DNA from: Bispira polyomma
Taxonomy: Eukaryota
Assembly (NCBI GenBank): GCA_965649765.1
Contig: OZ287750.1
Span: forward strand, 73,346,001-73,410,000
DNA length: 64,000 bases
Direction of reading: 5' to 3'
The notes under the pieces: model-generated
What the model was told of the DNA's origin: nothing
Seen by the model: the letters and a program-made list of their open reading frames with translations, nothing else
The model's database searches: none
Position numbers and translations under genes: made by a program
Shown: positions 7,187-56,077 of the stretch, piece after piece
How the letters are laid out: every line of letters starts with the position of its first letter
Numbering within the stretch: the first letter of the stretch is position 1

Positions 7187-9007
7187 TGTGATTCCGCAAA
7201 GGCCGATCTTGTGAAGATCACATATTTTCACTTACTTCAATTATTAGAAGACGTTTAAATGATAACAGAGATACATATGTTGCTTTCATTGATATGCAAA
7301 TAGCATTTGACTGGATAAACCGAGATTTATTAATGTACAAACTTCTTAACCATAACATAACAGGTAAATTGTATTGTGCAATTAATTCGTTATATAATTT
7401 TAATAAATCTTGTATTAAGCTAAACAACTTACTTAGTAACTGGTTTGTGGTAAATTCAGGATTAAGACAAGGTGACAATTTGTCCCCAACATTATTTGGA
7501 ATCTTTATAAATGACTTAGCCATTGAAATAAAAAATATGGGTTTAGGTGTCCCCTTTGGTAACAAAAAGATATCAATATTATTATATGCAGATGATATTG
7601 CTTTAATTGCAGAAAACGAAGAACATTTACAGCTTTTATTGACTAAACTGGATCAGTGGTGCAAAAAAATGGCACTTATTAATAAACGAATCAAAAAGTC
7701 AAATAGTACATTTCCGCAAAAAACGAAAACCACAGTCTTGTTGTAAATTTGTTACTGGTTCCTCAAAGCTTGAGATTGTTGATCAATATAAGTATTTAGG
7801 TGTATCTTTGCATGAACATCTAGATTATAAAGTATGCGCAAAAGAATTATCAGAAGCTGGTGGGCGAGCACTAGGTGGATTAATATCAAAATTTAAACAA
7901 TATAAAAATATTGGATTCAAAACATTCTCAAAATTATATGAAAGTGGCATCATACCTATAACAGATTACTGCAGTGGTATTTGGAGTTTTGCACACTCAA
8001 ATTATGCCAATAAAATTCAGAATAGAGCATGTCGTTATTTTGTGGGTGTGCATGCAAAAACCCCACTAAATGTATTGGATGGGGATGTAGGATGGCTAAA
8101 ACCAAAATTCAGAATGTATATGAATATCATTAAGTTTTATAATAGGCTTATTAGAATGGACAATGAGAGACTAACATATCAAATATTTGAACATGATCTT
8201 CAGAACATAACAAATGAAAGTTGGAGCGGAGACCTAGAAAACATTTTAGATCAGATAGGCTTGCAAGAAAAACTTCTCCTAGGAGAAGACATTGATTTAA
8301 ATACCGCAGAAGAGAAGCTATTTTGTTTAAATGATCTCGAATGGCAAGAATCTATATGTACCAAACCAAAATTAAGATCGTATGTCAAATATAAAACTCA
8401 TATTTATACAGAAGAATACGTATTACAGAATCTTTATAGAAATGAAAGATCTCTCATTGCCCAATTAAGATCTGGAATACTGCCTCTAGCCATAGAAACT
8501 GGAAGATACCAGAAAAGAGATTTGTCAAGTAGGATATGTACAATGTGTAATTTAAATTTTATAGAAGACGAACAGCATTTTTTAATTGACTGTACAGTTT
8601 ACGATAGAGATAGAAAAGTGTTCTTTGATTATGTTGTTAAAAATGTGGAAGTAAACTTTAATCTTTTGAGTTCGGAAGAAAAATTTATTAATTTAATGTC
8701 ACTCAAAGATAAACATATTAAAACATTTGCAAAATTTTTATGTAAACTATGGGAATATAGGAAATCAAATTTTTTAAAAGAATTGAAGATATAGAAAGTT
8801 CAATAAACTGTGAATTTTACCATTTCTGCAAAATAATAGTTTTATACCTTTTTATACACACATTAAATTAGAATATTATATTTAAACTGACTTATAAGCC
8901 TTAAGGCTGAGTGTTACAATTAATAAAATGTGATTTTGTATATTTGTATATGTATAACACAATGTCAGTATAATAAAAAATTTATCTATCTATCTATCTA
9001 TCTATCT
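7187..9007 (+). mobile_element. 5'-truncated non-LTR retrotransposon (RTE-X-like), RT plus C-terminal CCHC region, frameshifted
   Basis: FRKGRSCEDH, AFID..AFD, GLRQGDNLSPTLF, LLYADD (ORF 7294..7746); frameshift in an A-run near 7663; ORF 7808..8794 with LAIETGRY..RICTMC..EDEQHFLIDC; AATAAA then (ATCT)n tail at ~8984-9007. Clade is inference. Confidence 0.9.
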
Positions 9008-22191: not shown

Positions 22192-22408
22192 TTATAGCTT
22201 ATTGTCCGCCTCATTTACTGCGGGATTAGGAACGGTCCCGTTTTTCTCGGGGGGTTCTGCGGTCGACTTCATAGGGATAGCCGTTGTGGCAGTCGTCACT
22301 CGTGACGTCATACTTGTGACTCCCCCGGAAGTAGTGATGTAAGACTTGGACGGATCCTTGCCCTTCTTGTTACAAGTCAGACAGCGCAGGAATCCCATCC
22401 TAAACTGC
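22192..22408 (-). CDS. GPCR exon 9 (helix 8 and Ser/Thr-rich C-tail, stop TAA)
   Basis: TTTTCCAG acceptor; RQFRMGFLRCLTC (candidate palmitoylation Cys), then ORF 22192..22398. Confidence 0.92.
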
Positions 22409-25400
22409 CTGGAAAAGTGGATATCATGGATTAGTTATTAACAGAAAAATAATGCTGTTGGAAAAGTCATAACAATTAATATTCAAGGAACTATATTTGG
22501 GTTGTTTCCATGTGCACGGTAAACTGCGTTAGTGGTTCGTGGAAGGCAGAACAAACAAAAAAATACTAATGCTCAAATTTGTTCGTCTTCAGCTTGAAAA
22601 GTGACAGAAATTTGCATCTCATAAGGCCGGAAATAATATTGCAAATTGTTGTTTTTATTAGAAGAAAAATTACGAAGGATATGGCCATTTTAATAATCTA
22701 TAGATTAGTAATTCTTAAAAGTACCCATTTATTTGGCACATCTATCCATCCACTTAATGTCTTTTGGAATTGGGATTACCTAGGCGTAATGAGTGCTGTC
22801 AGATTTTGTTTATTTATTTGATTGTTTGATGAACTTTACCTACTTGTTTTCTTTATTTCAATTAAATTCTTCTGTGTAATATAACAGCACATTATGTGTA
22901 AATGATTTTCATAAAGAAAGCAAAGATAATCATGATGCTCTCAATAAATGTCAAAGACCTGGAAAATCCGATAATGAAATACTTTTTGGCCATAGTAATA
23001 TAACAGCATATTATATGTAAATGATTTTGGCAAGAGAAACCTTTAAAGTAATATTTAACCTTTTAGGATATATTCTACAATAGCGTACACAATATTTTGC
23101 CAGTATTTTTTCTCAAAAACTTTGGCTTCTGGCAACCACCACTTTGTTTCCCAAAATGCTTGTCAGTTTGACTAGGAATCGAATGTATAAAATGTAATAC
23201 ATTACACTTCCAAAAATACATTGCAGGAAGACAGAATATGAGAATGTACATCTAATTATGCTAGTACTTTCAAGTCAGCCAGTCTGTTTCAATGTGCGAT
23301 TGACCGCATCCTTGTTTTTGTAAAACTGTCTTACCTGGAGAGGAATCCGTACAGAATCGGGTTGAGTGCGCTATTGGCCAGAGACAGAAAGTTAAACCAG
23401 AGAGTGATGTCCCCGAGCTTAGCGATCATGGCCAGGTTGGTTTGGGCATGGTAGCTGGTCCTGTAAACCTGCATGGCGAGGTAGGGAGCCCAACAGACGA
23501 TGAAGACCACCAACACACTGATGAGGATACGGATCACCTAGCCGAGTGAATGATAATTACAGATGTAAAGATGGCTGAATATAGAAATATTCACTAAATT
23601 AATCTGAAAGTCCTAGATATGCCACTGGGGTTAAATACACATTAAATAACAATGATATATGTATATAAGAATCCACTTGACAGCATTCATGTGATCAGTG
23701 CGCCTTGCAACACTTTAAAAATAATACAAAGATTACAGTCAAAAATAAAAAGAAAAATATAGTCTAAAGGTTAAAAGATAGCTCAAAAAGGTATGTTTTC
23801 AGTTGTTTTTGAAAGCTATTTGTTGTCTGACTTTTATGTAGATGTGGTGGCAGTTGATTCTAGAGTTTCAGTGCAGCAACACTGTAAACGCAGTCTCCAG
23901 CTGGGATAAGCCTGGTCCTCCGAATATGTACTTTTGTACCAGTTTTGTTTCAAAAACATAAAAGATGGCTTTATTTTTAACTGAACTGAATAGCAAATTG
24001 GTAGCAAGTCCAATTCCATCAGAAGGTCTTTGGCAAAGTCCTTGGATCTAGGTAACACAAGCCTAGCAGCACAGTACTGGACACAAAGCAACTTATCTAG
24101 CAGCTACATACAAGTACCAATACGTATTCTATTGCAGTGATGAAGCCTGGATGTTATACATTTTTGTTGGGTCAGCACACAACAAAACCTGGTCATGTAG
24201 CAGACAGATACAGAACTAAAAAATTACTAATGTATTATGCAAATATAACTTAATATGTGAAGTCCTAAAAAAGCCACCATGGTCAAGTAAATATTGTAGC
24301 TAAATACATATGATATGGATATCATTGTAAATACTGCAGTTTATATAAATATAACTCTGATGGAGAACAAAAAAAAATTAAGTTGCTTTTTCGCGTTCAG
24401 TTATAGAGACTATTTACAAGTCAGTGTTAGTAGCTATCGTTAAACAACTGTACAAGTTTTTATACCTGTTGTGCCTGTGAAAAATGAAACTTAAACAAAA
24501 ATAAATTAACGAAAAAACAATAAAATGATTTTACAAATTCCTATTTTCGTTGCTTGATATTTAAAGTTAATGGATTTTTCTTCAATGTTATCAGGGTCTC
24601 TTTCTAAATTTAATATGGAGTCTAGCAGGTGACAATTTGTGACAGGTGATGATGGCATATCGGCGATGGAGAGAAAATGGAATAGTGACAGCCACACCTA
24701 TGTGAATTTAAAAGGTAGGACATTATATAAATACTGTGATGGACTCAAATAGCAGTGCCTTAAAGAAATCATGCTATTCATATGCTAGTTTTCCATATTA
24801 AAATATATACACAAATGACATTGACTAATAATTCTAGGTTAAAGTCATTAATAAATATCCCTAACAAGATCTGCTTTCTGACAAAATTTATTACTCTTCT
24901 AATTGAAGGCTTACTAGATTCTGTGTTTACCCTGAAATAAAGACAAGGACACTTCTGCCACAACCTTCCTGTTCTAGAACTAAACATTGCAATTAGTAAG
25001 GGCATAGTATTTGGGTTATATATTGTTAATTTATGAGGTTACATGTGTGGGACTACAAAAAATGCACAGAAACTTCTTATGGACATTGCATATGTTTTAA
25101 CAATCAAATGTTTGGTTTTAATTTAAAATTTGTTGAAAATTTAGAAATTCAATGGCTGTATTCATTAAAAACCACATCTTTGTGTTATTGAAAATGCTTT
25201 AATGTGGTAGAAAATAAAGATTTCAGGTGTATATTTTTAGCATCAAAAGCCAGGAGTTTTGGGAATTGTGTAATTAATTGTTACTTTCAAAAGATCTACA
25301 TGTGTTTGACAATAGTTCTTGGGACGTCATGAAAAATTGCTTTTAAAATGACAAGAAATAAAAGTGTGGGTGCATTAGTTTGGTACATTTGTGACATTTT

Positions 25401-28400
25401 ACATTTATTTCAGTCAGAAACTATACTTAGAGAATTCATAGATGACCAACTAAATTGTCCTAGATATTGAATTCAAAATTTAAATATGACACATCCATAT
25501 AAATAACCCTGCCCAGTTACTGGAAACCCAAAGGCATAAAAGTGTAAAGATTTGTGACTTCTTTTCATTTATGCCACATATTTATATTTTGCTCCAGATA
25601 TGTAACTCACTCTTTCACCAATGTTCTTGCTCCATATTTGCCTATAATAAATAAAAATATTCCAAAATTTTGCTTAATTATAAACCACTTTTGTGAAATT
25701 TTGTCAAAATCAGACAGCCTAAAATGTGTGCAAGGTTGGATGGTTATGCAAACATTCATTAAAAGAGCAGAGAGGTCAATAGGTTATATCGTTCATTATT
25801 TACACAATGACATTATGATTAATGAAAGCACTATAATTAACTAATACAGTTAGGCTGATGTTTTAACTATGATAATTCCTTTCTACATTAGACTAGATTA
25901 ATCATTATCAATATGTACATTCATTATTACATAGAAAGTCTACATAAGTCATGGTGTTTTTAATATGGAATAACTATGATAAGATGAAATGTCTTTAATG
26001 AAAAATCATCTTAGCACAATCATTATTTTTGAATATTAAAAAGAGTACCATATAAAGTTAACAATAAAATACAGTTTAAGAAAAAAAAAATAGAAATTTT
26101 TAATGCCTCTGTTTAAGCAAACTCAGGAATAGTGTATGCTCTTTGTTTTTAAGAGTGTTTTTTTCTGTACACATTTAAAGGGATATTTTGCTATTTTTGC
26201 TCTTAAAGGTGAGTCAATGTTAATGTTAAAGGTGAGTCAATGTTACAGATTTCAATTGTTTTGAGAAGGAAAATAAACAAATAATATTTAAAGTTCCTTT
26301 TTCGCGTTTAGGTTTTAGAGACTATTTACAAGTCAAGTATTAGTAGCTATCTATTAACAACTCTAAAATTTGGTGTACCTTTTTGGTCTTTTTCCTGTTT
26401 TCCTTTGCCTTCAAAGAATGTTAACATACATCATTGATAACTCAATACAAACCCATCAAGCATAGATTATTATCAAGCATCAAACTACTTGTTGCATTTA
26501 TGATAGTCATTTTTAGAATAATTTTCATTTTGTTTTACAAATTTAAATTACATCACATCGAGTGAAACCGGGTGTATTACAAATAATATCAAATCGAAAT
26601 CTTCTGAATTATTAAATTATGAATATTAAATACACAAATCAGTCACTTTAGGCAGCTATAAATAAATTAACCAATTATCTTATGCAGCTAATAATTTTGT
26701 TATGGAACGGTCAAGTTGTTTATAAACTGCAAGTTTCAATTTTACTAAACCTTTGTCAATTCATTGTAAATTTTCTGTAAAAATAATAAATAATGGTACA
26801 CCTATGTATATTCTTGTATGTATACAGTCTACCTGGCTACTAAGATACAGTCGTCCCAAATGCAGCATGTCTAGCATATTGATAATATTTTATATGTAAC
26901 TACTATTCCCTTTCTTAGACAATAAGAATCTCACCTGAACACGTCCAGACGAGTCTGATGTTTTCTCATCCTTTTTCCCATCTGCAGAACTAAAAGATGT
27001 AAAACAAGAGTTTCTTTTTAAAAAGACACAGAAGCACAGTGTGAAATACACTAACATTGTTATGGCCACTGTAGAAGATAAAGTCCGAGAGTGTGTACCT
27101 TGTTGTCAATTTTACTTTATTACGACGAAATGCGCCCTGGCGGCTTTTGTTTTCGATGCACACTTCCAAGTCTTTGTAATATATACTCAGTTAAGTGGGA
27201 TCTAATAACTATAAATCTGACACCCCCTCAGTTTGGACGGATCGATTGATTCCAACCAATCAATGAAGGCCTTTCATCTTATTTCTAATCTTACAGCGTC
27301 CTTTTCAGAATAAAAACAACATCAGGCTGTAGCTGATAAAAATTGTTTCCAGAAAAACAAAAGCATTCTATTGAGAAAAATCCCGTTCAAAGTAGAAGGA
27401 CACTGAGTAGCAACATAACTAAGTATCAAATAGTGGAAAAGTCCCCAATGTACCCTTCTACCAAGATTAGTTTCAACATTTAAGTGATTATTGCTTGGTT
27501 GGTGTCTCATTCCTTCACGATAATTTCAAATAATTTGGTTCATTTAGTTTTAATGAAATCCTTGTGGCAAAGAATCAAACCCACAGGACAACAGGCATAA
27601 CGATAACATACTTGGTGAAGGTAATTATGGAGTAAATTGTCACACAATTGATCAATGCTACATGTACTGTTCCAGTATTAAGACTAGTCGGGAAGATTGT
27701 ATTATCTTACTCACTCGAAAGACATTTTTGACAAAAAGGATGGGAAAATTTGCAAAAATTTGAATGAAAAATTTAAAAGATGAGTTGGGATGGACCAAAA
27801 GATAAGTCTCAACTTTAAAAGGATAAGTCGTGACCTCATAAAGATAAGTCTTAACCTCATAAAGATAAGTCTGCCAGCCCTCCCCAGTGGCGACCCCTAC
27901 TGCTGTTTGAGGTGAAATTGAAAATTACAGTTTTTCCTGCACTTTAGGTCCTTGGAATGGCCAAAAGATAAGTCTTAACCTTAAAAAAATAAATCATAAC
28001 TTCATAAAGATAAGTCTTAACCTTATAAAGATAAGTCTGCCAGTCATCAGAGCAAAATATAGGTCCTTGGAAGGTTATGATTGACCCCGAGTGACCATGA
28101 TGTATCGGCCGATTGGCCCCCACTCAAACATGTTTGAAAACCATGAGTCTCCCGAGTCAATAAGATAGCTCGTTAGAACCTCAAGGACCTCGCCGATAAT
28201 GGCCCAATCGCATAATCGGAATAGTCAGGAGCTATGATCGCCATAATGGAACATAGGTAATACAGACAACAGAAGTAATTATTGATGCCTTTTATAAATA
28301 AAGCTTATTTACTTGACAGGTGCTGAAATATATATACTTGACATTCTTAACACCGACAAATATAATGCACACCAATGAAGTGTATGTTAAATGTTTTAAA

Positions 28401-30518
28401 CCCTAAAAATATGAAATTACAGTGTCCAAACCAATTTACCCTCCTGTGTCATACATTTTTTTCTAATGTATTTGGGTCTCATGTTGCTTTCAACATCTTT
28501 GGTCACATTGTCAGGGGCATATTTATTGATGAAGGAAACCAGTCCTATTTTCACTGGAAACCACAGACCAAATGGCATGTACCTGGTAAAGTTTCCCACC
28601 TAAACGAAGCAATAGAAGTTAAAAACCACTGTCCTTCACTGCTTTAACAAAAATGACCAACGACCAACACAATATAACCACATATATTGAAAGTGGCATA
28701 AATACCGATATAAATCAATGTACATTTCCTATACATCCCCTGCCAACACTTACAGCATAAACTGCTCCATTTGAACCTCCCTCTAAAAGACCATATTCTA
28801 TATCGAGAAGCTTTCATAGTCTTTCCTGAGATGGTTCTTCTATATAGTTTTTTTTTTTTTGTAAACATGTACATTCCTTACATATCCTTGCTGTATCTAC
28901 TGTTATTTCTGAACCTTGTTTAAAAGACTACCTTTCTATATTAAAACCCTTTCTAAATCTTCCTCTGGACGGTCGGTCCTTGACCTACAGGCACCACTGT
29001 AAACTCTAAATTTCATACATATCCCGCTGACTACTCCCTGCTTCACATGCTGCTGTTTAGAAAGTATAGTTCGTAAACTTGAATTGTTGGATAATAAATT
29101 TGGGATAAGGGAAGTGTAGTTCATAAAATTGATTTTTTTTAGAGAATAAATTTTGAATAAGGAAATCGTAGTTGATAAAATTGAATTTTTAGATAATAAA
29201 TTTAGAATAACGGAAATATAGTTTATAAAATTGAATTTTTGGATAATCTAAGTTCAGATAAGAGAGGTTTTTTGTGGTTACTGTATACTGTAAACTCTAC
29301 ATCCTCTGTGTCCTCCACACACCACTCACTGTTTCATCTGCTGTTGTTTTTGGACACTCTTCCAGAGGGTGATGGAAGTTCTGATGTAAGCAAAACCCAT
29401 CAGGAGGGAGGGGATGAGGAATATCGCCACAAAGATATAGACGTAAAAAGCCCTCTTCTTGGCCAAGTCATAACCAGCCACTGTGCAGATAGTCCCCTGC
29501 TGTATTTCCTGAAAACAGAAACAGATTCATTAAATCAAATTGCAGCCTTGTAGTTGTATTCTCCAAAACATTTGAAGCTCAGCTCAACCTCAGCCTTAAA
29601 TATATGGTAAACTGGCTACCAGACTTTGCTAACAGGTTCCGGTGAGGTATCATCCGACAACATTTTTACAAACAATAAAAAACATATTGTCTATGTATAC
29701 ATAATCAAATCTGTGTCAATTACATCCATGGTCGAGTCAATCCAATCACAACATACATTACAAAATAAAAATTACTCTCTTTTTTTGGTCGGATCGGATG
29801 CGGAGGGGAAGTGGAATCAAAGCTATCAAAACACTTACTCATTGACATAAGATGTATACAATGACGGGCCAGTGGATTGCTTCTAATTTCCTCTATTATC
29901 ACTATTATTACCATGGGCTTTCCTCGTGGCAATCAAACACTTCCCCAATATGTTATACAGTAAAATGACTAATTATTTTTTTAAGTTTATTTTAAGGAAT
30001 ATTGAGAGCCAGTATCAGATGCAATGTAAAATCAACAGCTACCTATGTGTTTGTAAGATGCCAATATTAATGGCTTACCAATTCAAAAGATGCCAGGTAT
30101 CAATAATGCACGTTAAAGAATCCATACTACAATATACTGTTGCTTTTCAATGGTCAATGGGGCTTTGATTGGGGGGGGGGGGGGGGTAGTTAGGGACAGA
30201 ACCATTTAAGAACATTATTACACCTTCATCAATTCTAATGTTCAACTTACTAAGATGCCTGGCATCAATATGGCACAATACAAATCCACAATACAGTACA
30301 TTATATGGTACATTGGTATTAATTGATACTCACGGCCAAGAAATATGTGGGCAAAGAGAGTGCAATGCCAAGTAGCCAGACACCTGCAATAATGATGGCA
30401 GTTCTCTTGAAGGAGCTCATCCCCTGGGCCTTCATAGGGTGATTGATGACCATGTACCTGTACAGGAGAAACAGAAGAGTATGTCATGGATAGGTAACAC
30501 ATCCAAGGCTAAACCATT

Positions 30519-30586
<68 letters not shown>

Positions 30587-33500
30587 GTCAGTTAATTTTA
30601 TCATCTTAAACTTCTTTACATCTATACTGCATAAATATCTCGGCTCATATCTCACCCCTTGCTCTCAGCAAATCAATACCCGTCGTGGTAATCCTAACAA
30701 ATTATTTCTAAATGTTCCTACTTTTGATGCCAGCATAGACAGCTCAAAAGTCCATTTCGATCGTAGTTTCTCATACGCTGCACCCAAGTTATGGAATGAC
30801 ATACCACAAGATATTAGATGCTTGCCTTCTATTTCGACTTTTAGAAGCAAGCTTAAGTCCCATCTCTATCAAAAAGCCTACCCCGATTTTTTGCGCCTCA
30901 GGAGCCGCTAGTACTGAGTTTAAGCGCCATTGTAGAATTGATTAGATTAGATTATACTAGCAAGCATTAGATAATACACTATTGTTAGGGTGAGAGGGTG
31001 TTACTTTGAACAGGCAATGTCAATGTGGCAAGATCATTTATTTTATAACATTTTAAAGTTTTTAAAAGCTGGATTCAGAGCTTTCTTCATAGCAGCTCCC
31101 ATGTTATGAGAAGAGTCTACCCGTTGAGCTAAGATCACTAAAAACACTTTCTATTTTAGCAAAATCCTGAAAACCAATCTCTTCAACATTGCTTATCCTT
31201 CTTAATATCCTCTAGTACACCACAACATCCTCTCTTATGGGCTTGCTATGTTTATGGACTACACGGTTGGTTAACTGATCCTGTTGGTATGCTTTAGAAG
31301 ATGCCTAGCATCAATAAAGTGCATTAAATATGCATAATGATAAAGGATAAAGTTCCATCCGCATACATCAAAAGTCAATATTAACCGGGCTACACAGATG
31401 CATAGAAATATAGAAGGAGATCAAACATTTGATGTGCACGGAAACAGGTTTAATGATACAACTTGTACACTTATTAACAATTTAGCTATATATACCCTAC
31501 TCACCGCTCTAGACTCATAGACATCAGGGTGAAAGCGGACCACATGAAGGAGGCGAAGTAGAGCCAGAGGACGATCTTACAGCCTATCAATTTCAGCTCC
31601 CAAATCATGTAGATAGATTCTACAGCCTGTAACATAGATGTACAACAACAATATGTCAACTATAACAAGAATACACACCAACTTCATCTTAAAGCATGCC
31701 ACATTGTGATCGATGGATTATATGACTTACAACACGATGGCACTAAGTAGAAAGCATGCCACATTGTAATGCTTCCAGCTTTGGATATAATTTAGCAATA
31801 CAAAGGTATGCGTTCCAGCATACTTTTAATGGTTTGGTCTTTGCCCCTATGCCCTAGCCCTCCACAAAGCTTGGCTCAGTGTTTTGTTTCTGTAATCCTG
31901 CAAACAGACAAAGCCAGAGCAAAATCATACAGGTCAAGCTCCCGCTTCCATGCAAGTAAGATTATATGGCCTGTGACATGAATACAGAACATCCAGATGT
32001 TTTAGCTCTTTTCCCCCAATATTAAAGCCAGATTGTGATCACACAGACCATTTCTCAAAGCTCCCACCCTGTGTAGATAAAAGCAAGAAGCAATGGCCAA
32101 CATGTGCTTAACATCATTTCGACGATCCCATAGATATAGTTGTCAAAGATGTATAACAAATGAACTCTTGAGTTCTTTTGACCATGTCTTAGTTCATTTG
32201 GGTTCAAATCCTTTGAAATATTGTTTAAACCTTTTAGGGACCAGGGTTCAAACCCTTTGAAATATTGTTTAAAACTTTTTGGGGAGCAGGATTCAAGCCC
32301 TTTAACTACTCTTTAAAATTTTTTGTGGGTTAAAGTTCTTTAACTACTCTTTGAACGAGAGTTCAAGGCCTTTAAGTATTGTTTAAAACATGTTACGGAT
32401 TAGGGTTCAAGCCCTTTATAAAAGGTCACATTTTTCCATGTTCCAGACAGTTGAATATTTTTCCAAAAGAGCAATCTTTACAATCGGGGTGTCACCTCAG
32501 TTAATCTTAACATTTGGTGAAGCCATCCCAGTTGATCTTAACAATAGGGGAAGCCACCCAGATTTACAACAATGAGGATTCCATTTTGTTGTTTTAGGGG
32601 GAATAAGGGGTAAATACACCCGGATCGACCGGGGTGGCATTAGGATTACTCTGGACTACTCCAGTTTATACGGGCCCAGAGGGGGGTAAAATCTCCAATC
32701 GGCCCATTTTCTAAACATGTTCAGAAACTTCACAATCCCGTTACTTGATCCCCGGATCACCAGGATTATGACACTAAATGTCCAGATCAATCCTGGAGCT
32801 ACAGGATTACGTCCGGGGGTACACAAAATCAGGGCTGGTCCTGATCTATCTTGACAGTGGAACAGCCACAAGTTTCTTTGTTGGGCCAGTAAGTGTTTTG
32901 TTCTGATGGGATTTTTGGTATTTTTTAACAAAAGGTCAGATAAATGTTCTTGTAACATTTGGTGGCCCTGAAAAAGGCCAATATATATTATGTCATTCTC
33001 TGAACATTGGCAGCTCTGCAGCTGCTGGAAGAGGAGGAGGACGATTTTAGAGAGATGGAAAGCTGGTGGAGGTGCGTCTGCTAGAGGTCTTGGGCAGTGT
33101 GTCGGATGTGGTGGTTGCTCCAGCTGTCGTGGTCGGTTAGCGGTCATCACTCTCCTCTGTTATTGGCTGCATATCCAGGTTTGGGTAGTCTCCTCCTGGG
33201 TTGTCTACAAGGTACAAAGACAAGGAGGTCTGGTTGTGAATGTCTGTATTCACTGATGGGATGTTGGAGATATGGAAGGGGCTGGCCGCACTCTTCTGTG
33301 GTGAAGGTATATGTATAATTGTCCCAGTCGGTGTCCGTCCCAACACCGCTATCTGCCTGGGCTGCTGCTTCTGGAAAGGGCTTTTGTCGCTGTGCATGTC
33401 GATTGGTAATACTGCGCTGGTGGTCCATGCTAATACTGCTGCGGTTGTGGTGGTCCCTGCTGGTACTATTGCTGCTGCTCTTGCTGCTGGGATGTGCGCA

Positions 33501-36500
33501 TCTAGTCTATTGGTACACAGGCCTGTACAGTTGTTGGGTTGGCAATGGTGGCTTCCATTGCTGTCGCCAATTCTGGGATGGTGGTGGTGGCATGTCATAT
33601 GAGGTGGAAGCAGAAGGTGCCTAAATCTGCTGCTGCTGATGCTGGGTTGTTAAGGTTGACAATAGCTGGAAGGTCATGGTCTGGAATTCCATAAAAAGAG
33701 TGTCTGGTAAAGTGTCAGCCTGGGCCTTGACCCAATCAAAGTAGGCCACCCTCATCCCTGATGTTTCTGGCTTCGAAGCTGCTGGCTTACCCTTGAAGTT
33801 TGACTTCGTCACGAAATGTCGGATGATGTGCGGCTTCATAAAGGTGAAATGTTCATTCACCCAGGTCTGTCTCTCAGTCAACTCGGATCGGGCCTGCCCA
33901 GATTTCAAAATACTGAGTGTGCCAAACATTGTCCTATGCAACTGAAACCATCGTTTCAACTACTCCGCATCCCTGCCCATCCTAGCCAAGATATCTGCCC
34001 AGCAAGCCTTTTTCTTGACATTGCCTTGTAGTCCTTCTGCTTTTTGTTAAAAAGCAACTCGTGTTCTCTAAGCCAGTCAACCAGGGAATCCTCCTACAGT
34101 ACTGTCAGGGCGACACTCTTGGTTTTCCCCCCTCTTCTACTTCCTGCTGGGTGACACCTTGCCCCCGGACTTGTCTCTGTCAGATTCGGAATTGGGTACT
34201 CCCTTTCTTCTTCTTCTTCCCTCCCCACCCTCCCTGTTGATTGTGTTTCCTGTTCCTCCTCTTCCCCCCCCTCCGCCTGAAGTGTAACTCCCACATGAAA
34301 CACTGCCTCCTCAGCAGCTGAGGCCATCCTCCTCTTCTTGCCTTTTCCTTTGCTCCCATTGGGTGACATTTTCAAATTTTTCAAAAATATTTTTCTTAAG
34401 TCATAAAAAAACAACAACAAAGTCATAAAAATCTATCCATCTATAAATTTGGGTAATATCTGTAATATCGGTGAAAAAATGCCAGCACTGGTGTAGACTC
34501 ATGGAAGTGTGAAGATCGAATGAGGTAGAAGTGGGCAGCTGTCCACTATTTATACCATTTATACCACTCAACATAACCACCCCGATTGTTAGGATTACTC
34601 GAGGCCCAAACAAGCTAATCCTCATTGACCCTGGTTAATCTTTACAATGGCAGTGGATCAATCGGGGTGTCACAATGATTAAACGAGAAGCCACCCAAAT
34701 TGCCCAGAGTCAATGAGGATTGCATTTTGGTGTTTTTAGGAGACGGGAAATACACCCCGATTACTCGAAGTATCAACAACATTAACCGGGGTGGCATTAG
34801 GAATATTTGGGGTTACTCCCCATTTACCAAGCGCAGAGGGTGGAAAATATCTAGGGCCATTTTCTGAACATGTTTAGAAACTTCACGGTCGCTTTATTTG
34901 CTTTCCGCATCACATGGATTACGGCCCGGACTATCCGGATCAACCCTGGATCATCATAATTTTTCAGGATAGGTACAGGATTACGTCTGAGGTGCCCAAA
35001 ATCGGGGGTGCTCCCGATCTATCTTGACAGTGAAACAGGCCATAGATCGAGTACTCTGTTGCTGAAACAGCAGTGTTTTATTGATGTGCGACTGTTACCT
35101 ATACCTATGTAAGCTATATAAATGTTTCAATTATTATTATTATTACCGATAGGTAGGATACCATGCATTAGCAAAGCTTCAAAAATCTGACAACACACCT
35201 ATAACAAAAAAAATATCATTTCCCTAATAAGTCTGTGGTTGTATATTGATTCATTCAATAGGCGTACACAATATTATAACTTATGGTCAACCTACCCAAG
35301 TGCTTGATTAATTACATATCATTATTTAAAAATATTGCCGTAAATTCGGTGTCAGATTTGTTTGAGTTATGGTAATGTCCCTCCTTGTGCGTATTGTTAA
35401 TAAATCAAAGCATCGGGACAGAAACTGGCCCTAGGTTCCTGCTATACTGTCTTGTTCATATAGACCTTGCAACACATTGGTAATATGTCGAATACATTGC
35501 AGAATGTTTAGTTATCTACAGTAAAAATACCTAAAGAGAAAATTAAGGACGGCCCAAGTTTTTGCCCAGTGAGTGTAGATGTGCGAACGAGTCTGCCACG
35601 TGACTATATATGACGTCATAACACATCCTGTACCAGCCCGTTGACGATTTGTTTTGTAATCTGACCTCACATATTGTTATTACAAGGGCTTGAGTGTCAC
35701 ACAAACTTTCAACTTGTCTGACATGGGGACAAAATCTGGCCTAAATAATATACCTTGGTATTTGTTTTCACTGTACAAAAAAATAGGTGTATTGTACACA
35801 GAACTATATTTAGTGTAGAGTTGATATCTAAGAGTGGCTTCAATTGTAGTACAGAATTATATGAGTATTTTAAGAAGATAAAGTTAAACGAGGTTCTTTC
35901 AACATTTGGCTAGATAGGCAATATACTAGTATTTACTGGTATAAATATAACATATTTGTGACCATTTTTTAAATACATGTGAGAATCTGAAATAACTAAA
36001 TGTTCATTAGTTTCCTTAAAATGTAGTTCTGTGAAAGTACATGTATCCTTGGTAATAATTTTAATGTTTTTGATACTGTCAGTGTAACATATTTCACTTA
36101 AAGGGTCAACGTATATGTGTATGGTTTAGCATTGAAGTTCGTGATGGGACAGATTTCATATCATGTGTTAAATTTTAGATAATAGTGTTTGTACATTTTA
36201 CTAATTTTAGAGAGAATTAAACTAAAAGCCTTAGTATCAAAAATACCTAGAGCGGCACTCAGTAAAGCGCATATCTCCACCGTGCTAAAAATGTTAAACA
36301 TATAATTGATAGATCTGCCATTCTGCACACAAGGTCTACTCTAAAATGTAAGGTATTTTTCATTTCACCCATGCCCCATTCATCCACTATATGTCATGTA
36401 AATTAGTTCAGTAGTTTTTGTGTTCAATTATTCTTGTGACAAACAATTACATAAACCAACTAACGAACATAGGTTATAATATAGCTTTCTCGCTTAAAGT

Positions 36501-39500
36501 AAATTTTTTTTTTTTTTTTAATTTAATTTTTGATATCTAACGTCTACTCTAGTACCTGTTTAGGTTATATTGGGACGGGTAGTTGGAAATGCTGGAAGAA
36601 ACACTGCATACAGTTGATCAAGGTTCTGCACTGAAACCAGCGGCCCACAGTAAGAAACTACCACCTTTCACACATCGATGGGATTTGAACTCACGCCGCC
36701 CAGAGGTGAGAGACCAGTGATTGTGAAGTGCAATGCTTGCTAACCACTAGGCCACCGCGGCCCCCCGCTGAACGAACTAACGAACATAGGTTATAATATA
36801 GCTTTCTCGCTTAAAGTAAATTTTTTTTTTTTTTTTATTTAATTTTTGATATCTAACGTCTACTCTAGTACCTGTTTAGGTTATATTGGGACGGGTAGTT
36901 GGAAATGCTGGAAGAAACACTGCATACAGTTGATCAAGGTTCTGCACTGAAACCAGCGGCCCACAGTAAGAAACTACCACCTTTCACACATCGATGGGAT
37001 TCGAACTCACGCCGCCCAGAGGTGAGAGACCAGTGATTGTGAAGTGCAATGCTTGCTAACCACTAGGCCACCGCGGCCCCCCGCTGAAGGTAATAACAAT
37101 ATCTTTACAAAGTACATGTATCAGTTTTACCACTACAACAAAAAACAGAAATTACACTAATAGATGATCAATAAAGTATTGCCGGTAGGTAGAAAGTTAT
37201 TTATGGTTATAACTTACACACCTACAATGTAAATTAACCTGTCCACACCCTCTCCCCCCTCCCCCTTTTTTTTTTGCAGACACAAGATTGGTTGCTATTT
37301 GTTTCCCAGCAAGGATTTAATTAGATAATTACACACCTGGGGTGAAACAGATCTGTGTTACTATCATGTAATTATCAACTTTGCCTTGAAATTTAAATAT
37401 ATAATGAATTAGAAACACTTAAAAGGTCTAAATTTACCTTGCAGGTTGGTATCCAATGTGTAGCCATTTTAACCATCCATATTTATTGAAAAGCTTTAGC
37501 AAGAAGAAAATCATCAGATTTACCTCAATCAAGGAGTTTCTGTTTCTAGTCTGTGTATGTCGGTTTGTTTGTCACCTGAATGACACAAAAAATCGTAATT
37601 TTGGTGGATGGATAGGGGTTGCAGAACAAAACCCAATGGATTTTAAACAGTTCGAAAGATCTTATGCCTTTTACTTGGGGTACAGCAGCATTGACACCAT
37701 TATAAAAAGTAAGATTAATCTCTCAAAAATCGTTACGATCCACTAAGCATTGAATTCTATATTTATACTACTTCGCTTTTTATATCGTCTGATTCCTGTT
37801 TAAATTTATACTGATTAAACTCATTCTATTCAAAGTGCCAATTCACCCTTTTCTTGACTGTCAAAGTATAGCTAACCATCACCAGTTACTGTCTTTCCCC
37901 TCTAACTGAAGACAGAAACTTGGGGATGACCATTTCTATGAATGTCACCAAGGTTTCTTAACAAGCCACTAAGAATAGGACCCAGTGACATAGGACTGCT
38001 AGTTTAAGTGGTTCTCCAAGCCACTATGTATCACTAACAATAGGACCCAATAACATAGGGCTGCTAGTTTAAGTGGTTCTCCAAGCCACTATGTATCACT
38101 AACAATAGGACCAAATGACATAGGACTGTTAGTTTAAGTGGTTCTCCAAGCCACTGTGTATCAGTGACAATAGGACCCAATGACATAGGACAGCTAGTTT
38201 AAGTGGTTCTTCAAGCCACGATGCATCACTAAGAATAGGACCCAATAACATAGGGCTGCTAGTTTAAGTGGTTCGCCAAGCCATTATGTATCACTAGCAA
38301 TAGGACCCAATGACATAGGGCTGCTAGTATAAGTGGTTCTCCAAGCCATTATGTATCAGTAACAATAGCACCCAATGACATAGGACTGCTAGTTTAAGTG
38401 GTTCTCCAAGCCATTATGTATCACTAACAATAGGGCCCAATGATATAGGACAGCTAGTTTAAGTGATTCTTCAAGCCACTGTGTATGAGTAACAATAGCA
38501 CCCAATGACATAGGACAGCTAGTTTAAGTGGTTCTCCAAGCCACTATGTATCAGGAACAATAGCACCCAATGACATAGGACTGCTAGTTTAAGTGGTTCT
38601 CCAAGCCAGTATGTATGTGCCTCTACCTGGTCGTCCCTGACTGAGATCAAACCCAGGTCCTCTATATTCCTAAGCGAGTGTGTTGCTCATTTGACCAATA
38701 TGATCAATGCAACATATTATAGGTTCTTTACCCAGAGACTATGGACACAAGGCCACCCTTTTAAGATGATCTCCCGAGCGATAATGTATCTTCGAACGAC
38801 AACAATTTACCTATAGCAGTTCTATGTATGAAGATGCCACTTTATGGCTGCTCTACTTTCCCACTTATGTGATCACTGATCTGTAATATATTCTTATAAA
38901 ATCTCAATCTAGTGTTGTAAATGTACTTTAATTATGTACACCTTATATTTTAATGTATTCATATATTTTTTTCTTTATGCTATGTATACCCATATATACT
39001 TTATTTACACCGAGTTTGAAAAATACTTTAAATAAATAAGCAACACTTGTGTCATTTGATGACAACACACATTTACGAAGGATTATGGTGTTATTGATTT
39101 TTTGTTGTCTTGTTTTACAATTTATGGCAACCCCCTAGAGAATGTGAAACTTTAATGACTATTCTGACACACTGTATACCTCTCTTTTTATCTAGATTAA
39201 CTTGATTTGGAGGACTTATTTGTATGAAAGTTTGACAGCAGATATAGATATCTATATGGGTGTTCGTGACAAGGCCTAGTTAAATCTTTTTATAGCTATT
39301 TGGTGTGTCTTTTCTCTTCTAAATCTGTTATAAGTCGAGGGAAAGAAAAGGCAAGATTACTCACAGAAAAGTCTTGCAAATAGATGATGGAGTTGTCTTC
39401 CTATATATATTAATCATAGATTTTGTTGGAAATTGTTGGAGCTGTTGGAACTTATTTTGAAGTAGTTATAATGGTGCTGGGAAGAAGTTTGTAAATTAAA

Positions 39501-42500: not shown

Positions 42501-45500
42501 TGCCTGGGTCACATATGGAAGACGGTGCTGCAATTGGGACGATGAATGTTGAAAAATTTTGATTCTTGATCATTCTTCGTGAACATGGCAGGAAATTAAT
42601 TTTTTGTTATTAGGTCGGCGACTATCCACCAATACATTACTATCCCAGAGCCAACTACACCACAGGGGGATGAATGACATGTTTTGAGGGATAGGGAATT
42701 TCGATGGATGTGGAATGGGGAAGAAAGGCAAAAACGCAGCAGGAATTGGCTACCAAACTGGAGGAATTTCCAGGTTCACCGACATCCACTTTCTAAACTT
42801 TTAACATTGTGGGCTAGACATTTGAGAATCATGTCATGTATTTATGTATATATATTGGTTACAGCTTTCGCCGAATTATGGTTAGTTGGTTCTGAATATT
42901 TTATTAATATTACATTTATGAAGAATATACTTCAAATACTTAATTTGAATTTGAATAGTATTTAATATTGGTAATAATTAAAATAAACCATATTGCAATG
43001 GCTGGAAAAGGCATTCACATTTCATAGAACGTTTACATCATGTAGAATCATATATTGAATAGGTTATATAACATGGTTAACACTTTAATTTTACAGATAT
43101 CACCCCTTGTTACATATATCTCCTCCATTATGGGTTTAAATCTCACATATGTGGGAGAGTAGGAAGTAGACTTGCTGAAGGTCAGTGGTTTACAGAGCAG
43201 AAAACTTTGACCTATCCTGATTTCCTCCAGCACTGAACTACTGGTCATGATATGGCACAAGACATTTTAAAAACGATGTGAATCCAAAATAAACCACGAA
43301 ACTGAGAGTATACATTTTTGTGAATAAACAGAGCTTTTGTATATACATATCAGTATTACCACACACCTTTATAGGTACATATCAGTATTACCACATACCT
43401 TTGTATGTACATATCAGTATTACTACATACCTTTATAGGTACATATCAGTATTACTACATACCTTTATAGGTACATATCAGTATTACCACATACCTTTGT
43501 GTGTACACAAATCAGTATTACCACATACCTTTGTATATAAACAGAGATGAGTATTACCACATACCTTTATAGGTACACATATCAGTATTACCACATACCT
43601 TTGTAGGTACACAGATCAGTATTACCAAGAGGTCAGCCACTGCTAAGTTACAGATGTAGATGTTGGTTACTGTCGTCCTACCCATAAACTTAGTCACTGT
43701 CACAATGACTAAGATATTTCCTGAAAATATATATTAAAAAAATACATGCTAGGAGAGGTAAAAGTTTTATTGTCATGGCTGGCTGTATATTTAAACATTT
43801 TTGGGATAGAATGGAATATGTAACAAAGCTATAATTTACAGCTTTGTAAGCATAACAAGCATCTCAATATAGAAATGCAGAGGTAGACAAGGAGTTTAAG
43901 CATGCAAATATGTGAGATACAGGTTCATCTGAACAAGTGACTGTTATGTTACTCTATTTTGACCATCTATTATTTTTCAGGTCATATGTATGTTCTTTAC
44001 CACACAAAACATCAATACTGACTAACACGAAAATCCCCCCCCCCCCAAGCACTCACCAAGCAATATATTAATTGTGACTTGAATCCCCTTCCCCAAACGC
44101 TTACCAAACAGCCTCACCAAGAAAATCACACCGTACACCACCCCTCAGGTGTTCTCTCCCACTCTCACTTAACAATTACCTCCACCAAGAAGATTACACC
44201 ATACACCACCTCTTTGACAATCAGGTGTTCTCTCTCATTCTTACTTACTAATTACCTCCACCAAGAAGATTACACCACACACCACCTCTTTGACAATCAG
44301 GTGTTCTCTCTCATTCTTACTTACTAATTACCTCCACCAAGAAGATCAACCACACACCACCTGTTTGACAATCAGGTGTTCTCTCTCATTCTTACTTACT
44401 AATTACCTCCACCAAGAAGATCAACCATACACCACCTCTTTGACAATCAAGTGTTTTTTTCTTTCACTCTTACTTACCAAACAACCCCACCAAGAAGATC
44501 ACACCATAAACCACCCCTTTGATAATCGTGTGCTCTTTCTCGCTCTTTCTCTTCTCATCTGCTCTCTGTTCGCTGTGTATCCTGTTCAGCTCATCTACGG
44601 TCTTGTTACAAATCCCATTACACACACAGATGTACTCCGTCCTCTCCATGTCCAGATCGCAGACATCGTAGATGATATCCAGACAGGCCAGCAGTCCGTT
44701 ATCTCCCCAGCCCTCCATGTTTTCACAGTCAAAATCTTCATTTGGATTTTTCACGGTGACGGAGGACTGTGTCGCGTCTTCATCCGGGCAATTATTCTGG
44801 CAGATGCAAGGGAACTCTTGCACGCCCATTCCACAGGTGAGAGTAACATGTCGGAAGCAAACGCGAGGATCTAGCAAGGACCACTCAGACGTGTCGGAAC
44901 AGTTTATAGGAGGGTCAGTAGGTGGAGCTAGTATACTGGGTGAGGTCATGACAACAGTGCTAGTGATGTTATGATCTTCAGTGTCCATTGATGTGACAGC
45001 TGAAATGGTCTGTTCATCAGGGTCTACTGTACTATGTAGGGCACCTGTATAACAGGAAGAATGAAAGATATTGTGTAAAGGTGGAAATTTTAGATGGAAG
45101 AAAATGCCACAATTTGTGAGAACTTTACTGGAATTAAGTTTCATTATTGGCTACGTTTTGATTAAATTATTAACATAAGTTCAAGTCTTTATTGGGAATT
45201 AATGTTCACTCTCTCAATGCATTAGCTAAACATCTCAATTACTTCCTGGTGAATATTTCCATTTACTTTCCAGTCAAAATTTCCATTTACTACCCAGTAA
45301 AATTTTTAATTACTTCCCAGTGAAAATTTCCAAATACTTCCTGGTGAAAATGTCTACAAGGACTGTATATCTGGAGAAACAGATATTTCTTAAGTTGTCA
45401 TATTAGCAGGTATACAATCTGAAAATTACAATGTTTTCTAATAGGAATGCATCTGTATTGTTACCTCCGCCAAGGAGATGACGTTTTTGTCTGTGTGTCT

Positions 45501-54500: not shown

Positions 54501-56077
54501 TCTCAAAATCTCTTAAATTTTTTCTCAACTAGTTTGATTGGCTGAAATTATTCTTTTCAAGAATTTGAATGGCTAAGGCTAATAAAATTCCAAAGAATTG
54601 TATTTTAGGAATGATTGTGAATACGTCCCCATGTATGTGTTGGAGCCCAGCTTCCGATTTGGCCAATCTAAGATGGGCATATGATTGGTCAGCCCACCTT
54701 AAGATTGGCCAGGAAAACTAGTCAAACTTGAGATTGAATATTGCAATTGAAAACTAGATATCTTAAAAGTTTGAATTGTGTAATAATTAATTCACATAAT
54801 GATGATTTACTGCTAATTTTTCAGCGTGATGATAAGTTTTACTGATAACCTTACCTATGCATTTCCACCAACCAACAATTAGTACTTATTTATCATTTTA
54901 TTTTATTCTACAAGTGCTATTGTGTTGTTCACAATTGAACATGTAAGGAAATCTGATAATCACCAAATTATTGAGAGAGAGAAAAAACATTATTAATCTC
55001 CATTGTAGTAAATCTGGTGTGGCTTACATCATGTAGGTTTAACAAACCTTTAATATATTACCAACTGCAATATTATCTTCAACAGTATTATACCTGCATA
55101 TTTGTATGTATTTGTGTACTAACATATTAGATCAAATATGATCGAGATTTACATATTATTTCTCTAGTGCACTTTAACCCACAGGCTATATATGATTGAC
55201 ATAATTTTACATCTTTTTGAATCACAGCCTGCCATTATTATAATTTAACTTAATACCAGGCATATACATATCCCCCCACTACAGCTGACACCATGAATAA
55301 ACTTCTTAAATAGTTTATACATTTTGTATATGAATAATAGGAAGGTCGCGTATAAGATGTTAGTATCTTGAATGAGTTCTATTTGAGATCTATATTAAAT
55401 ATTCTTCATATTTCTTTTTTTTCCACTCTCCAAAATACTATATTAGTGGCCATTTCCACAAGGAATTTACTTTATTATTGTAACTTTCTATGTTGTTATT
55501 GATATAACATCAAGAAGTAAAAACAGTTTTGATGACGTTGATGTAATCACAATGGTGCACAGGTCACACTAAAAAAAAAAAATAATAATCCCAACAGTAA
55601 ATAGCTGACATGTTACAATTATAAGCAACATTTAATAAGCCGAAAGTTTCTTATTTTTTTCACTGTTGGTATTTCTGTTCATGGATTACAAAAATTATTT
55701 CACTATCATGACAATTATAATGTTGTCGGAGACTTCCCCCCAAAAAAGTACACATACAAATCAGTAAAAATAAAATACCAACACTTCTATGTGTCTTTTT
55801 TTCTAAATTTCAAGTAACCTTATAACTTTTAAATCAATATTTATTCAACCACTCCAAAAAAGCTTCTGTGTAGATTTACCAACACCTTAAACTTTGCTCT
55901 CATACATTTTTTTTTTTAATTTTTTTTTTTTTTTTTTATTTTATTCAATTATTATAGTGACATGTACATGACATATATCTGCATATTTCCTTGATTTAAA
56001 TCTAATAATAATAATAACAAAGTCTTACCTTGTGCAGAGAGAAGAAGCAAGAAAGCAGTGATAGCTGGTGTCTCCAT
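22192..56077 (-). CDS. 9-exon class A (rhodopsin-like) GPCR, neuropeptide-receptor type (QRFP/orexin/CCK/allatostatin-A-receptor-like), 545 aa, with signal peptide and Cys-rich ectodomain
   Basis: Manual splicing gives one continuous frame: exons 49+567+122+122+124+179+55+203+217 = 1638 nt, all GT..AG, phases 1,1,0,2,0,2,0,2. Class A motifs: TM1 GN, TM2 NLAVADLL..CVP, ECL1 W..GCK, TM3 SLERY, TM4 W..SLP, ECL2 Cys, TM5 F..P..Y, TM6 FIVCWAP, TM7 NSALNPILY, helix 8 FR. Subfamily is inference. Confidence 0.93.
23335..23537 (-). CDS. GPCR exon 8 (TM6-TM7)
   Basis: ORF 23331..23537 VIRILISVLVVFIVCWAPY...ANSALNPILYGFLS; TAG acceptor, AG|GTAAGA donor. Confidence 0.96.
26935..26989 (-). CDS. GPCR exon 7 (ICL3: SADGKKDEKTSDSSGRVQ)
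   Basis: 55-nt exon with CTTTTAG acceptor and CAG|GTGAGA donor; supplies the required phase 2 to phase 0 bridge. Confidence 0.8.
27790..28045. repeat. Dispersed array of aaagataagtc motifs at ~21-bp period, two clusters
   Basis: Motif recurs about 8 times; probably TE subterminal repeats. Confidence 0.6.
29330..29508 (-). CDS. GPCR exon 6 (ECL2 Cys, TM5: EIQQGTICTVAGYDLAKKRAFYVYIFVAIFLIPSLLMGFAYIRTSITLWKSVQKQQQMK)
   Basis: TTTTCAG acceptor, CA|GTGAGT donor, FxxP...Y TM5 motif. Confidence 0.93.
30334..30457 (-). CDS. GPCR exon 5 (ICL2, TM4: YMVINHPMKAQGMSSFKRTAIIIAGVWLLGIALSLPTYFLA)
   Basis: GTACAG acceptor, GCC|GTGAGT donor, completes ERY, conserved TM4 W and P. Confidence 0.95.
30523..30582. 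repeat. (AT)n microsatellite
   Basis: About 30 AT units; another (TA)n + poly-T + poly-G at 57082-57157. Confidence 0.95.
30625..30953 (+). mobile_element. L2-clade LINE 3' end with (ATTAG)n tail
   Basis: RSFSYAAPKLWNDIP..FRSKLKSHLYQKAY; sister copy at ~46905-47300; another L2 fragment at ~31070-31345. Confidence 0.8.
31505..31626 (-). CDS. GPCR exon 4 (ECL1, TM3: AVESIYMIWELKLIGCKIVLWLYFASFMWSAFTLMSMSLER)
   Basis: TTACAG acceptor, CG|GTGAGT donor splitting the Arg of ERY. Confidence 0.95.
32482..32867 (-). mobile_element. Second, diverged copy of the same Harbinger-type terminus
   Basis: Colinear with 34660-35041 (aatgaggatt..ccggggtggcattagga..aacatgtt.agaaacttcac..gatctatcttgacagtg.aacag). 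Confidence 0.8.
32870..35041 (-). mobile_element. PIF/Harbinger-type DNA transposon relic carrying the MADF/Myb-like DNA-binding gene, no transposase
   Basis: Disrupted ORF ~33000-34369: LVDWLREHELLFNKKQKDYK, WFQLHRTMFGTL..KSGQ..LTERQTWVNEHFTFMKPHI, Gln-rich tail; terminus GGCCTGTTTCACTG at 35041; two TATAAAT upstream (~34545-34563). Confidence 0.7.
36458..37090 (-). repeat. 317-bp tandem duplication containing two SINE A copies (~36522-36765 and ~36838-37082)
   Basis: Units begin taacgaacat at 36461 and 36778; nearly identical. Confidence 0.9.
37962..38615. repeat. 65-bp minisatellite, ~10 copies, inside a minus-strand SINE (~37870-38700)
   Basis: ccaag/tcaag recurs every 65 bp from 38016 to 38601. 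Confidence 0.95.
39520..40460 (+). repeat. Three copies of a dispersed ~95-bp repeat (ctcagtttt.ccgggtcaattggttccaaccaatc..gaaggc)
   Basis: At ~39530, ~39720, ~40365; a fourth copy at ~27215-27320. Confidence 0.65.
40895..41100 (+). mobile_element. Older tRNA-derived SINE (family C), (AATC)n tail
   Basis: GGTGGTGTAGTGG A box, GTTCGAATC B box; decayed relatives at ~775-850, 1918-2105, 19110-19290(-), 43105-43292, 57160-57378(-), 59265-59485. Confidence 0.7.
43340..43598 (-). repeat. Tandem array, 7+ x 32-36 bp, copies of the exon 3 3' end plus splice donor
   Basis: Unit atatcagtattaccacatacctttataggtac(ac) aligns to 43579-43626. Confidence 0.93.
43599..43720 (-). CDS. GPCR exon 3 (end TM1, ICL1, TM2: GNILVIVTVTKFMGRTTVTNIYICNLAVADLLVILICVPTK)
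   Basis: TTTTCAG acceptor, AAG|GTATGT donor, GN and LAxAD motifs. Not in the ORF track. Confidence 0.95.
44100..44477 (-). repeat. Tandem array, 5 x ~76 bp, copies of the exon 2 3' end plus splice donor
   Basis: Units such as ttacttactaattacctccaccaagaagattacaccacacaccacctctttgacaatcaggtgttctctctcattc align to 44471-44547. Confidence 0.92.
44478..45044 (-). CDS. GPCR exon 2 (Ser/Thr-rich stalk, two 6-Cys repeats, TM1)
   Basis: Polypyrimidine tract + TACAG acceptor at 45045-45047; lies within ORF 44470..45144; ends ...VVYGVIFLVGLF-G|GTAAGT. Confidence 0.92.
46811..48145. mobile_element. Harbinger-like MITE (CAGTCACACCACGACGG terminus) interrupted by an L2 3' end and a minisatellite
   Basis: Shares its terminus and aatcagggt/aaccaggg motifs with 59924-60877. 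Confidence 0.5.
47523..47905. repeat. 73-74-bp minisatellite, ~5 copies
   Basis: ccactgacaatcat-like start at ~47523, 47597, 47671, 47744, 47817, 47890. Confidence 0.92.
51682..52135. repeat. ~109-bp minisatellite, ~4 copies (decayed copies to ~52800)
   Basis: attggtg(t/a)cac..ctgatc..ttacc..ggtgtgacagt recurs at ~109-bp spacing. Confidence 0.85.
53255..53890 (-). mobile_element. L2-clade LINE 3' fragment
   Basis: ORF 53396..53668 FKI...RAFSNAALLLWNKLP..FRKKLKTYLF; upstream LDFCNSLLFG; (AAT)n tail. Confidence 0.82.
56029..56077 (-). CDS. GPCR exon 1 (signal peptide METPAITAFLLLLSAQ-G)
   Basis: ACCATGG Kozak context at 56077, hydrophobic core, AG|GTAAGA donor, phase 1 matches exon 2. A second in-frame ATG lies at 56089. 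Confidence 0.75.

Follow-up and report, generated by a model that had tools for sequence, protein, structure and literature searches.

To our knowledge, few class A receptors other than the LGRs possess a modular repeat ectodomain, and we know of no folded repeat ectodomain in the rhodopsin-family peptide receptors (NPY2R, QRFPR, GalR2, NTSR1, SSTR). In RXFP1, the LDLa module probably acts as an intramolecular regulator, and the hormone-binding ectodomain of class B1 receptors has a sushi-like beta fold; undescribed small cysteine-rich domains are frequent in poorly sampled invertebrates. In GRL101, a class A receptor, twelve LDLa repeats are usually encoded one per exon, and their number differs between species (10.1101/2021.04.15.440029). 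Signal peptides are present in a minority of GPCRs and are tied to large N-terminal domains (PMC4240022). The locus considered here lies in a 64,000-nucleotide stretch of DNA from Bispira polyomma (GCA_965649765.1, contig OZ287750.1, positions 73,346,001 to 73,410,000; hereafter the window, to which positions refer unless prefixed), and it encodes a cysteine-rich module, apparently undescribed, whose receptor is of a known kind.

The receptor gene consists of nine minus-strand exons with canonical GT-AG borders that form an open frame of 545 aa, all junctions being predicted from the sequence. Database searches were run with single exons; the joined model served for frame checks and for comparison with homologous loci only. 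The features are as follows.

56029-56077, minus strand: putative exon 1, ATG followed by a hydrophobic leader of 16 codons that resembles a signal peptide, with a GT donor in phase 1
44478-45044, minus strand: exon 2, in phase 1-1, coding for an N-terminal stretch rich in S/T/P, the two modules, the helical linker and the first part of TM1
44988, minus strand: alternative start, an ATG inside exon 2
44902-45042, minus strand: S/T/P-rich stalk of 47 aa preceding repeat 1 (S+T 30%), with N-glycan sequons at N42 and N64
44788-44901, minus strand: module 1, six cysteines, spacing 13-7-8-1-3
44608-44727, minus strand: module 2, six cysteines, spacing 13-7-10-1-3, helix-loop-helix in the AlphaFold2 model
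44479-44607, minus strand: charged linker, predicted (low confidence) as a single helix continuing into TM1; 51% identity to the orthologue
44100-44477, minus strand: intronic 76-bp array, copies of the exon 2 end and its donor, with an in-frame stop directly after the first donor; the array of 76 bp x 5.2 spans 44145-44541
43599-43720, minus strand: exon 3, end of TM1 to TM2 (GN, NLAVAD), Pfam 7tm_1 at E 1.6e-9; 93% identity to the orthologue
31505-31626, minus strand: exon 4, ECL1, TM3 with C262, and the ER of ERY
30334-30457, minus strand: exon 5, ICL2 and TM4
29330-29508, minus strand: exon 6, short ECL2 with C336, and TM5
26935-26989, minus strand: exon 7, 55-nt ICL3 mini-exon, of the same size in the paralogue and present in the orthologue
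23335-23537, minus strand: exon 8, TM6 (CWAP) and TM7 (NPILY), Pfam 7tm_1 at E 2.1e-10
22192-22408, minus strand: coding part of exon 9, helix 8 and C-tail, TAA stop at 22194-22192

Exon 1 was chosen as the best signal-like phase-1 exon upstream of exon 2; another signal-peptide candidate, near 49700, was dropped as it has no in-phase donor. Exons 1 and 2 together encode an N-terminal part of 205 aa, the length given in the initial annotation, and the ectodomain comprises 187 aa. Exon 2 is covered by DNA contigs from three runs with zero differing letters, so that its sequence is not an assembly error. The array that follows exon 2 raises the question of whether this exon is joined to the 7TM exons at all or whether the module resides in a separate or truncated, ectodomain-only product, given that splicing from any of the later, copied donors would lead to an in-frame stop and leave the ectodomain with a partial TM1. 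However, exon 2 encodes the start of TM1, the rest of which exon 3 supplies in frame, and this donor and acceptor are shared with the orthologue and the paralogue described below, so we assign this possibility only a negligible chance. Another array (32 bp x 8.5, window 43345-43627) contains copies of the exon 3 end and donor.

By its motifs and exon-wise matches, the receptor is a class A (rhodopsin-like) GPCR. With 38.1 and 41 bits, respectively, exons 3 and 8 exceed the Pfam 7tm_1 cut-off of 30.5, and ERY, CWAP, NPILY and the TM3-ECL2 cysteines C262 and C336 are all intact within the open 545-aa frame (the list of class A motifs was taken from PMC12716839). Of the solved structures, exon 3 is closest to NPY2R and QRFPR, exon 5 to NTSR1 and exon 6 to GalR2; among PDB matches of exon 8, the histamine H2 receptor is slightly better than SSTR1, and for exon 4 the PDB search found no solved relative. 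The best relatives thus differ between exons, which argues against one-to-one orthology with any of the solved peptide receptors. Accordingly, the label “peptide-type” given in the initial annotation is loosely supported by the per-exon relatives, given their weak scores and the slight preference of exon 8 for histamine H2 over SSTR1, and no family is named. The receptor shares with NPY2R, QRFPR, GalR2, NTSR1 and SSTR the 7tm_1 domain, the GN/NLAxAD/ERY/CWxP/NPxxY motifs and the TM3-ECL2 cysteine pair but, unlike these receptors, has a short ECL2 (~19 aa with a basic patch at the end, both in this receptor and in its paralogue). Several other receptors were observed in this genome: a cluster of at least 3-4 at C3:36.52-36.66 Mb (L013-L015, L055, L056), which follow the paralogue in closeness when exons 3, 5 and 8 are compared; a gene for a third peptide-type class A receptor, more distantly related, ~25 kb past the paralogue (C3:73297145-73307736, minus strand, L006/L007); and an intronless 477-aa receptor (L017:481-1911, minus strand) that resembles the SIFamide/NPFF/orexin type by Atlas features.

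The two repeats in exon 2 are located on the minus strand within a single open frame, exactly where they had been reported, and the cysteine spacing holds as well, with the tryptophan at C1 plus six residues in both. Compared directly, the repeats resemble each other only modestly, as 56 of 10,000 shuffles attain their local score of 38, and their relatedness becomes convincing on sequence grounds once homologues are added. A profile built without either repeat 1 row gives the window repeat 1 a score of 11.1 bits, which is reached by 9 of 2,000 shuffles with fixed cysteines, and the orthologous repeat 1 a score of 21.0 bits, reached by none of 2,000; repeat 2 scores 20.3 bits against a profile made from the paralogue copies only (0 of 2,000 shuffles), and for the repeat 2 rows of the window and the orthologue, again 0 of 2,000 cysteine-fixed shuffles match the leave-out profile score. 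These scores are slightly favourable because the alignment columns came from the joint alignment. In this genome, the module is represented by at least 7 copies at E<1e-13, all at this locus, the next match being at E 1.4. A weak match (E 0.17) to an F-x-C-x-C-x3-C segment in a 63-aa frame at C3:95497047-95497124 (L030) was lost with a larger profile and is probably due to chance.

A phmmer search of 1.84 billion representatives identifies a single true match, P0001, on a 1.65-Mb contig of the ENA assembly ERZ22147071; a second match, P0002, was rejected because it represents a repetitive ORF, antisense to a retroelement gene, that does not have the cysteine pattern in common. No match was found in the scanned JGI metagenomes. 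P0001 is the orthologous exon 2 from a second species, 39% identical, with 12 of the 12 cysteines and both tryptophans retained and with the same phase-1 acceptor and donor as in the window. Exons 3-7 of the orthologue have the same borders and are 66-93% identical, the splice sites of exons 2-7 all being conserved; the candidate for exon 1 in this species has the same length of 49 nt but a weak donor and no sequence match. In the comparison of the orthologues, pS is 0.67 and 0.98 vs pN of 0.39 and 0.30, with synonymous sites near saturation, which at the sequence level shows a receptor and modules conserved under purifying selection. The suggestion that the repeats derive from an old duplication kept under selection is supported. 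The proposed acidic character of the module, by contrast, did not survive, given that the net charge is -2/-8 in the window modules vs -1/-2 in the orthologous ones (whose rows run a few residues longer).

The modules of the window gene are 37% (repeat 1) and 54% identical to those of the orthologue, compared to 66-93% for the TM exons, and this faster evolution would also fit a plain scaffold. Under this interpretation, the modules would be structural and take no part in ligand recognition: they could act as a rigid spacer, shield the receptor from proteases, assist its folding or trafficking, or serve for adhesion or as a mechanical tether, borne by a mucin-like stalk. The S/T-rich stalk, which is found in the window gene and its paralogue (30-35% S+T), the labile number of modules and the strong divergence of non-cysteine positions in repeat 1 are all compatible with such a role, which we nevertheless regard as unlikely in the light of the conservation of non-cysteine residues in the tandem paralogue.

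This paralogue, which the initial annotation did not mention, is located on the same (minus) strand ~8 kb beyond the window start (C3:73343586-73331000, L003/L004). It is 53% identical to the window gene over the 7TM part, with the same intron positions and phases, and has a long, acidic C-tail. The paralogue contains five copies of the module, one in the TM1 exon and four in separate upstream, duplicated exons, each copy with four cysteines. These module exons are bounded by AG and GT, in phase 1-1, and are 156 nt long (one is 153 nt); the four lie within an ~962-bp tandem unit whose copies are 92-96% identical, introns included, and an S/T-rich exon with a phase-1 donor is found above them. 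Spliced in order, as predicted, the paralogue exons remain open for 774 aa to a stop; a first exon was not found at the locus. In the second species, the same two genes occur in the same order, and the paralogue has two separate module exons, for a total of three copies; between these two exons the identity is 98%, compared to a mere 51% with those of this genome, which implies that the duplications are either independent or homogenised within species. The proximal module exon of the paralogue was also detected in a third, putative species (P0003; at least one copy). The module was found in two genes of this genome and in three species, in line with the narrow receptor group that had been anticipated.

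Among the paralogue module copies, dN/dS is 0.10-0.35, which points to purifying selection on non-cysteine residues among recent copies, and the proximal module exon shows 72-73% identity across the three species, many non-cysteine residues included, which exceeds what a bare spacer requires; both observations weigh against a purely structural role. C1 and C3 are jointly absent in all seven aligned rows with four cysteines (every paralogue copy), and this loss of the two always together implies a C1-C3 disulfide.

The predictions of structure and the searches for known domains agree in presenting the module as unrecognised, as originally proposed. For exon 2 and for 11 module copies, Pfam returns 0 families at E<=10, and PDB sequence profiles give nothing better than E>=0.8 (fragments of obscurin and neuraminidase). 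The AlphaFold2 prediction for one repeat from a five-row alignment (mean pLDDT 87.8, pTM 0.66; five models at 82-88) contains helices at 15-25, around C2 and ending at C3, and at 32-40, including the E-Y-x-C-x-C motif, so that the predicted fold is a two-helix, helix-loop-helix structure; the helical character suggested in the initial annotation is reproduced by the model. For this fold, there is no Foldseek match in the PDB, the best VIA Z being 2.2; the ESM Atlas yields no usable match by features and, by structure, a best TM of 0.63 to an unnamed 49-aa protein, a value that is uninformative at such length. An empty fold search for 46 residues is weak evidence of a new fold. The model of both modules together has low confidence (pLDDT 56), and all its fold matches, which were discarded, are to the long linker helix. 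In titles and abstracts of the literature on annelid, lophotrochozoan and sabellid GPCR ectodomains, a partial sample of that literature, no description of this module was found.

Short domains easily escape detection, and the module could in principle be a highly diverged EGF-like, LDLa, SMB, ShKT or class-B hormone-binding domain. The module resembles EGF in its six cysteines, an aromatic residue two positions before C4, the C4-x-C5 motif and the implied C1-C3 bond (of the EGF connectivity C1-C3, C2-C4, C5-C6, only C1-C3 is implied, from the co-loss), and CxCxxxC is reminiscent of somatomedin B. However, the C1-C2 gap is 13 (short in EGF), the C5-C6 gap is 3-4 (~8 in EGF), and the prediction is all-helical rather than a beta-hairpin, so that the EGF reading is outweighed by the disagreement in spacing and predicted structure. 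In ShKT, C1 pairs with C6 and the end is C-x2-T-C-x2-C, whereas here C1 is lost with C3 while C6 stays, and the end is C-x-C-x3/4-C. The LDLa domain differs in spacing (13-7-8/10-1-3 here) and by its acidic Ca-binding cluster, which is not conserved in the module, and the helical prediction does not fit the beta/loop folds of EGF and LDLa. Combined with the negative Pfam, PDB and fold searches, these differences render a diverged known domain very unlikely.

In its layout, the receptor is comparable to GRL101 and type C LGRs, with a class A 7TM domain preceded by an array of small six-cysteine modules of variable number. These proteins contain LRRs, of which there are none here (no Pfam match in exon 2, 187-aa ectodomain), and the TM exons resemble NPY2R, QRFPR, NTSR1 and GalR2 rather than LGRs. 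Judging from these features, the receptor is not a member of the GRL101/LGR group, nor is its module a member of the LDLa family. Another analogy, a functional one, is with class B1 receptors, where a signal peptide (putative in the present receptor) and a small three-disulfide N-terminal domain go with possible ligand capture ahead of the 7TM core; the differences are the receptor class, the fold, the lack of a Pfam HRM match and the tandem, variable arrangement of the modules.

The observations appear best compatible with a lineage-restricted module of ~40-50 residues, variable in copy number, that is carried by a functional class A receptor and might capture a ligand, a reading to which we give about even chances. 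At the level of sequence, it is supported by the open nine-exon frame, the intact activation motifs, the purifying selection and the apparently independent multiplication of exons in the paralogue, whereas the differing surface charge of the orthologous modules counts against it. A cleavable signal peptide would let the folded N-tail enter the ER. In the module, the core of C2, C4, C5 and C6 would form two disulfides, with C1-C3 as a dispensable third, so that the modules might be disulfide-stapled helical hairpins, carried above TM1 by a helical linker and preceded by a glycosylated stalk. The modules could then serve as a first, affinity-raising site for a peptide or small-protein ligand that would subsequently engage the 7TM pocket (two-site binding), and the number of copies may tune avidity or reach. 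A more speculative version, possible but decidedly tentative, is that a new domain family from fan worms or wider annelids made a peptide-type class A receptor two-site for a protein ligand (e.g., a pheromone or a cue related to settlement or to the tube), its avidity being adjusted as a phase 1-1 exon continues to duplicate.

Alternatively, the modules might be a built-in regulator (a lid, a tethered agonist or an inverse agonist) that acts on the receptor's own pocket instead of a capture site. In each of the two genes, conservation is highest in the copy adjacent to TM1, which a conserved predicted helix joins to TM1, and the short ECL2 with its basic patch would suit such an arrangement; yet a single lid would have no need for distal copies that number one to four depending on gene and species, and on balance we find this improbable. 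Whether as a capture site or otherwise, the gene pair appears to present an ectodomain under construction, with a two-copy, six-cysteine form vs a four-cysteine form multiplied exon-wise, putatively independently, in two species. The module would represent a new disulfide scaffold of ~45 residues that should be easy to express and solve, and the two receptors would provide a clean deletion series for assessing what a class A receptor gains from a new ectodomain.

Several other elements were observed in the window and the genome. A 316-bp element with an A-rich tail and a SINE-like appearance is present at window 36454-37088 as a tandem duplicate with 99% identity, and similar copies are found elsewhere in the window. 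An intronic element (window 32700-35050) contains several ORF fragments that resemble a decayed DNA-transposon accessory gene. Two overlapping plus-strand ORFs at window 7192-8791, with a frameshift between them, resemble a LINE reverse transcriptase. The genome contains erythrocruorin linker genes. The mitogenome (C75, L052/L053) is 15,503 bp long, with more than one trnM call and protein genes on both strands: one strand carries cox1, cox2, atp8, cox3 and nad3, and its complement the remaining protein genes, as assigned by eye from ORF translations. The same unusual strand pattern has been reported for Sabella spallanzanii (PMC7889199), which makes the host probably a sabellid fan worm, and presumably a different one, given that the two mitogenomes differ in length and GC.
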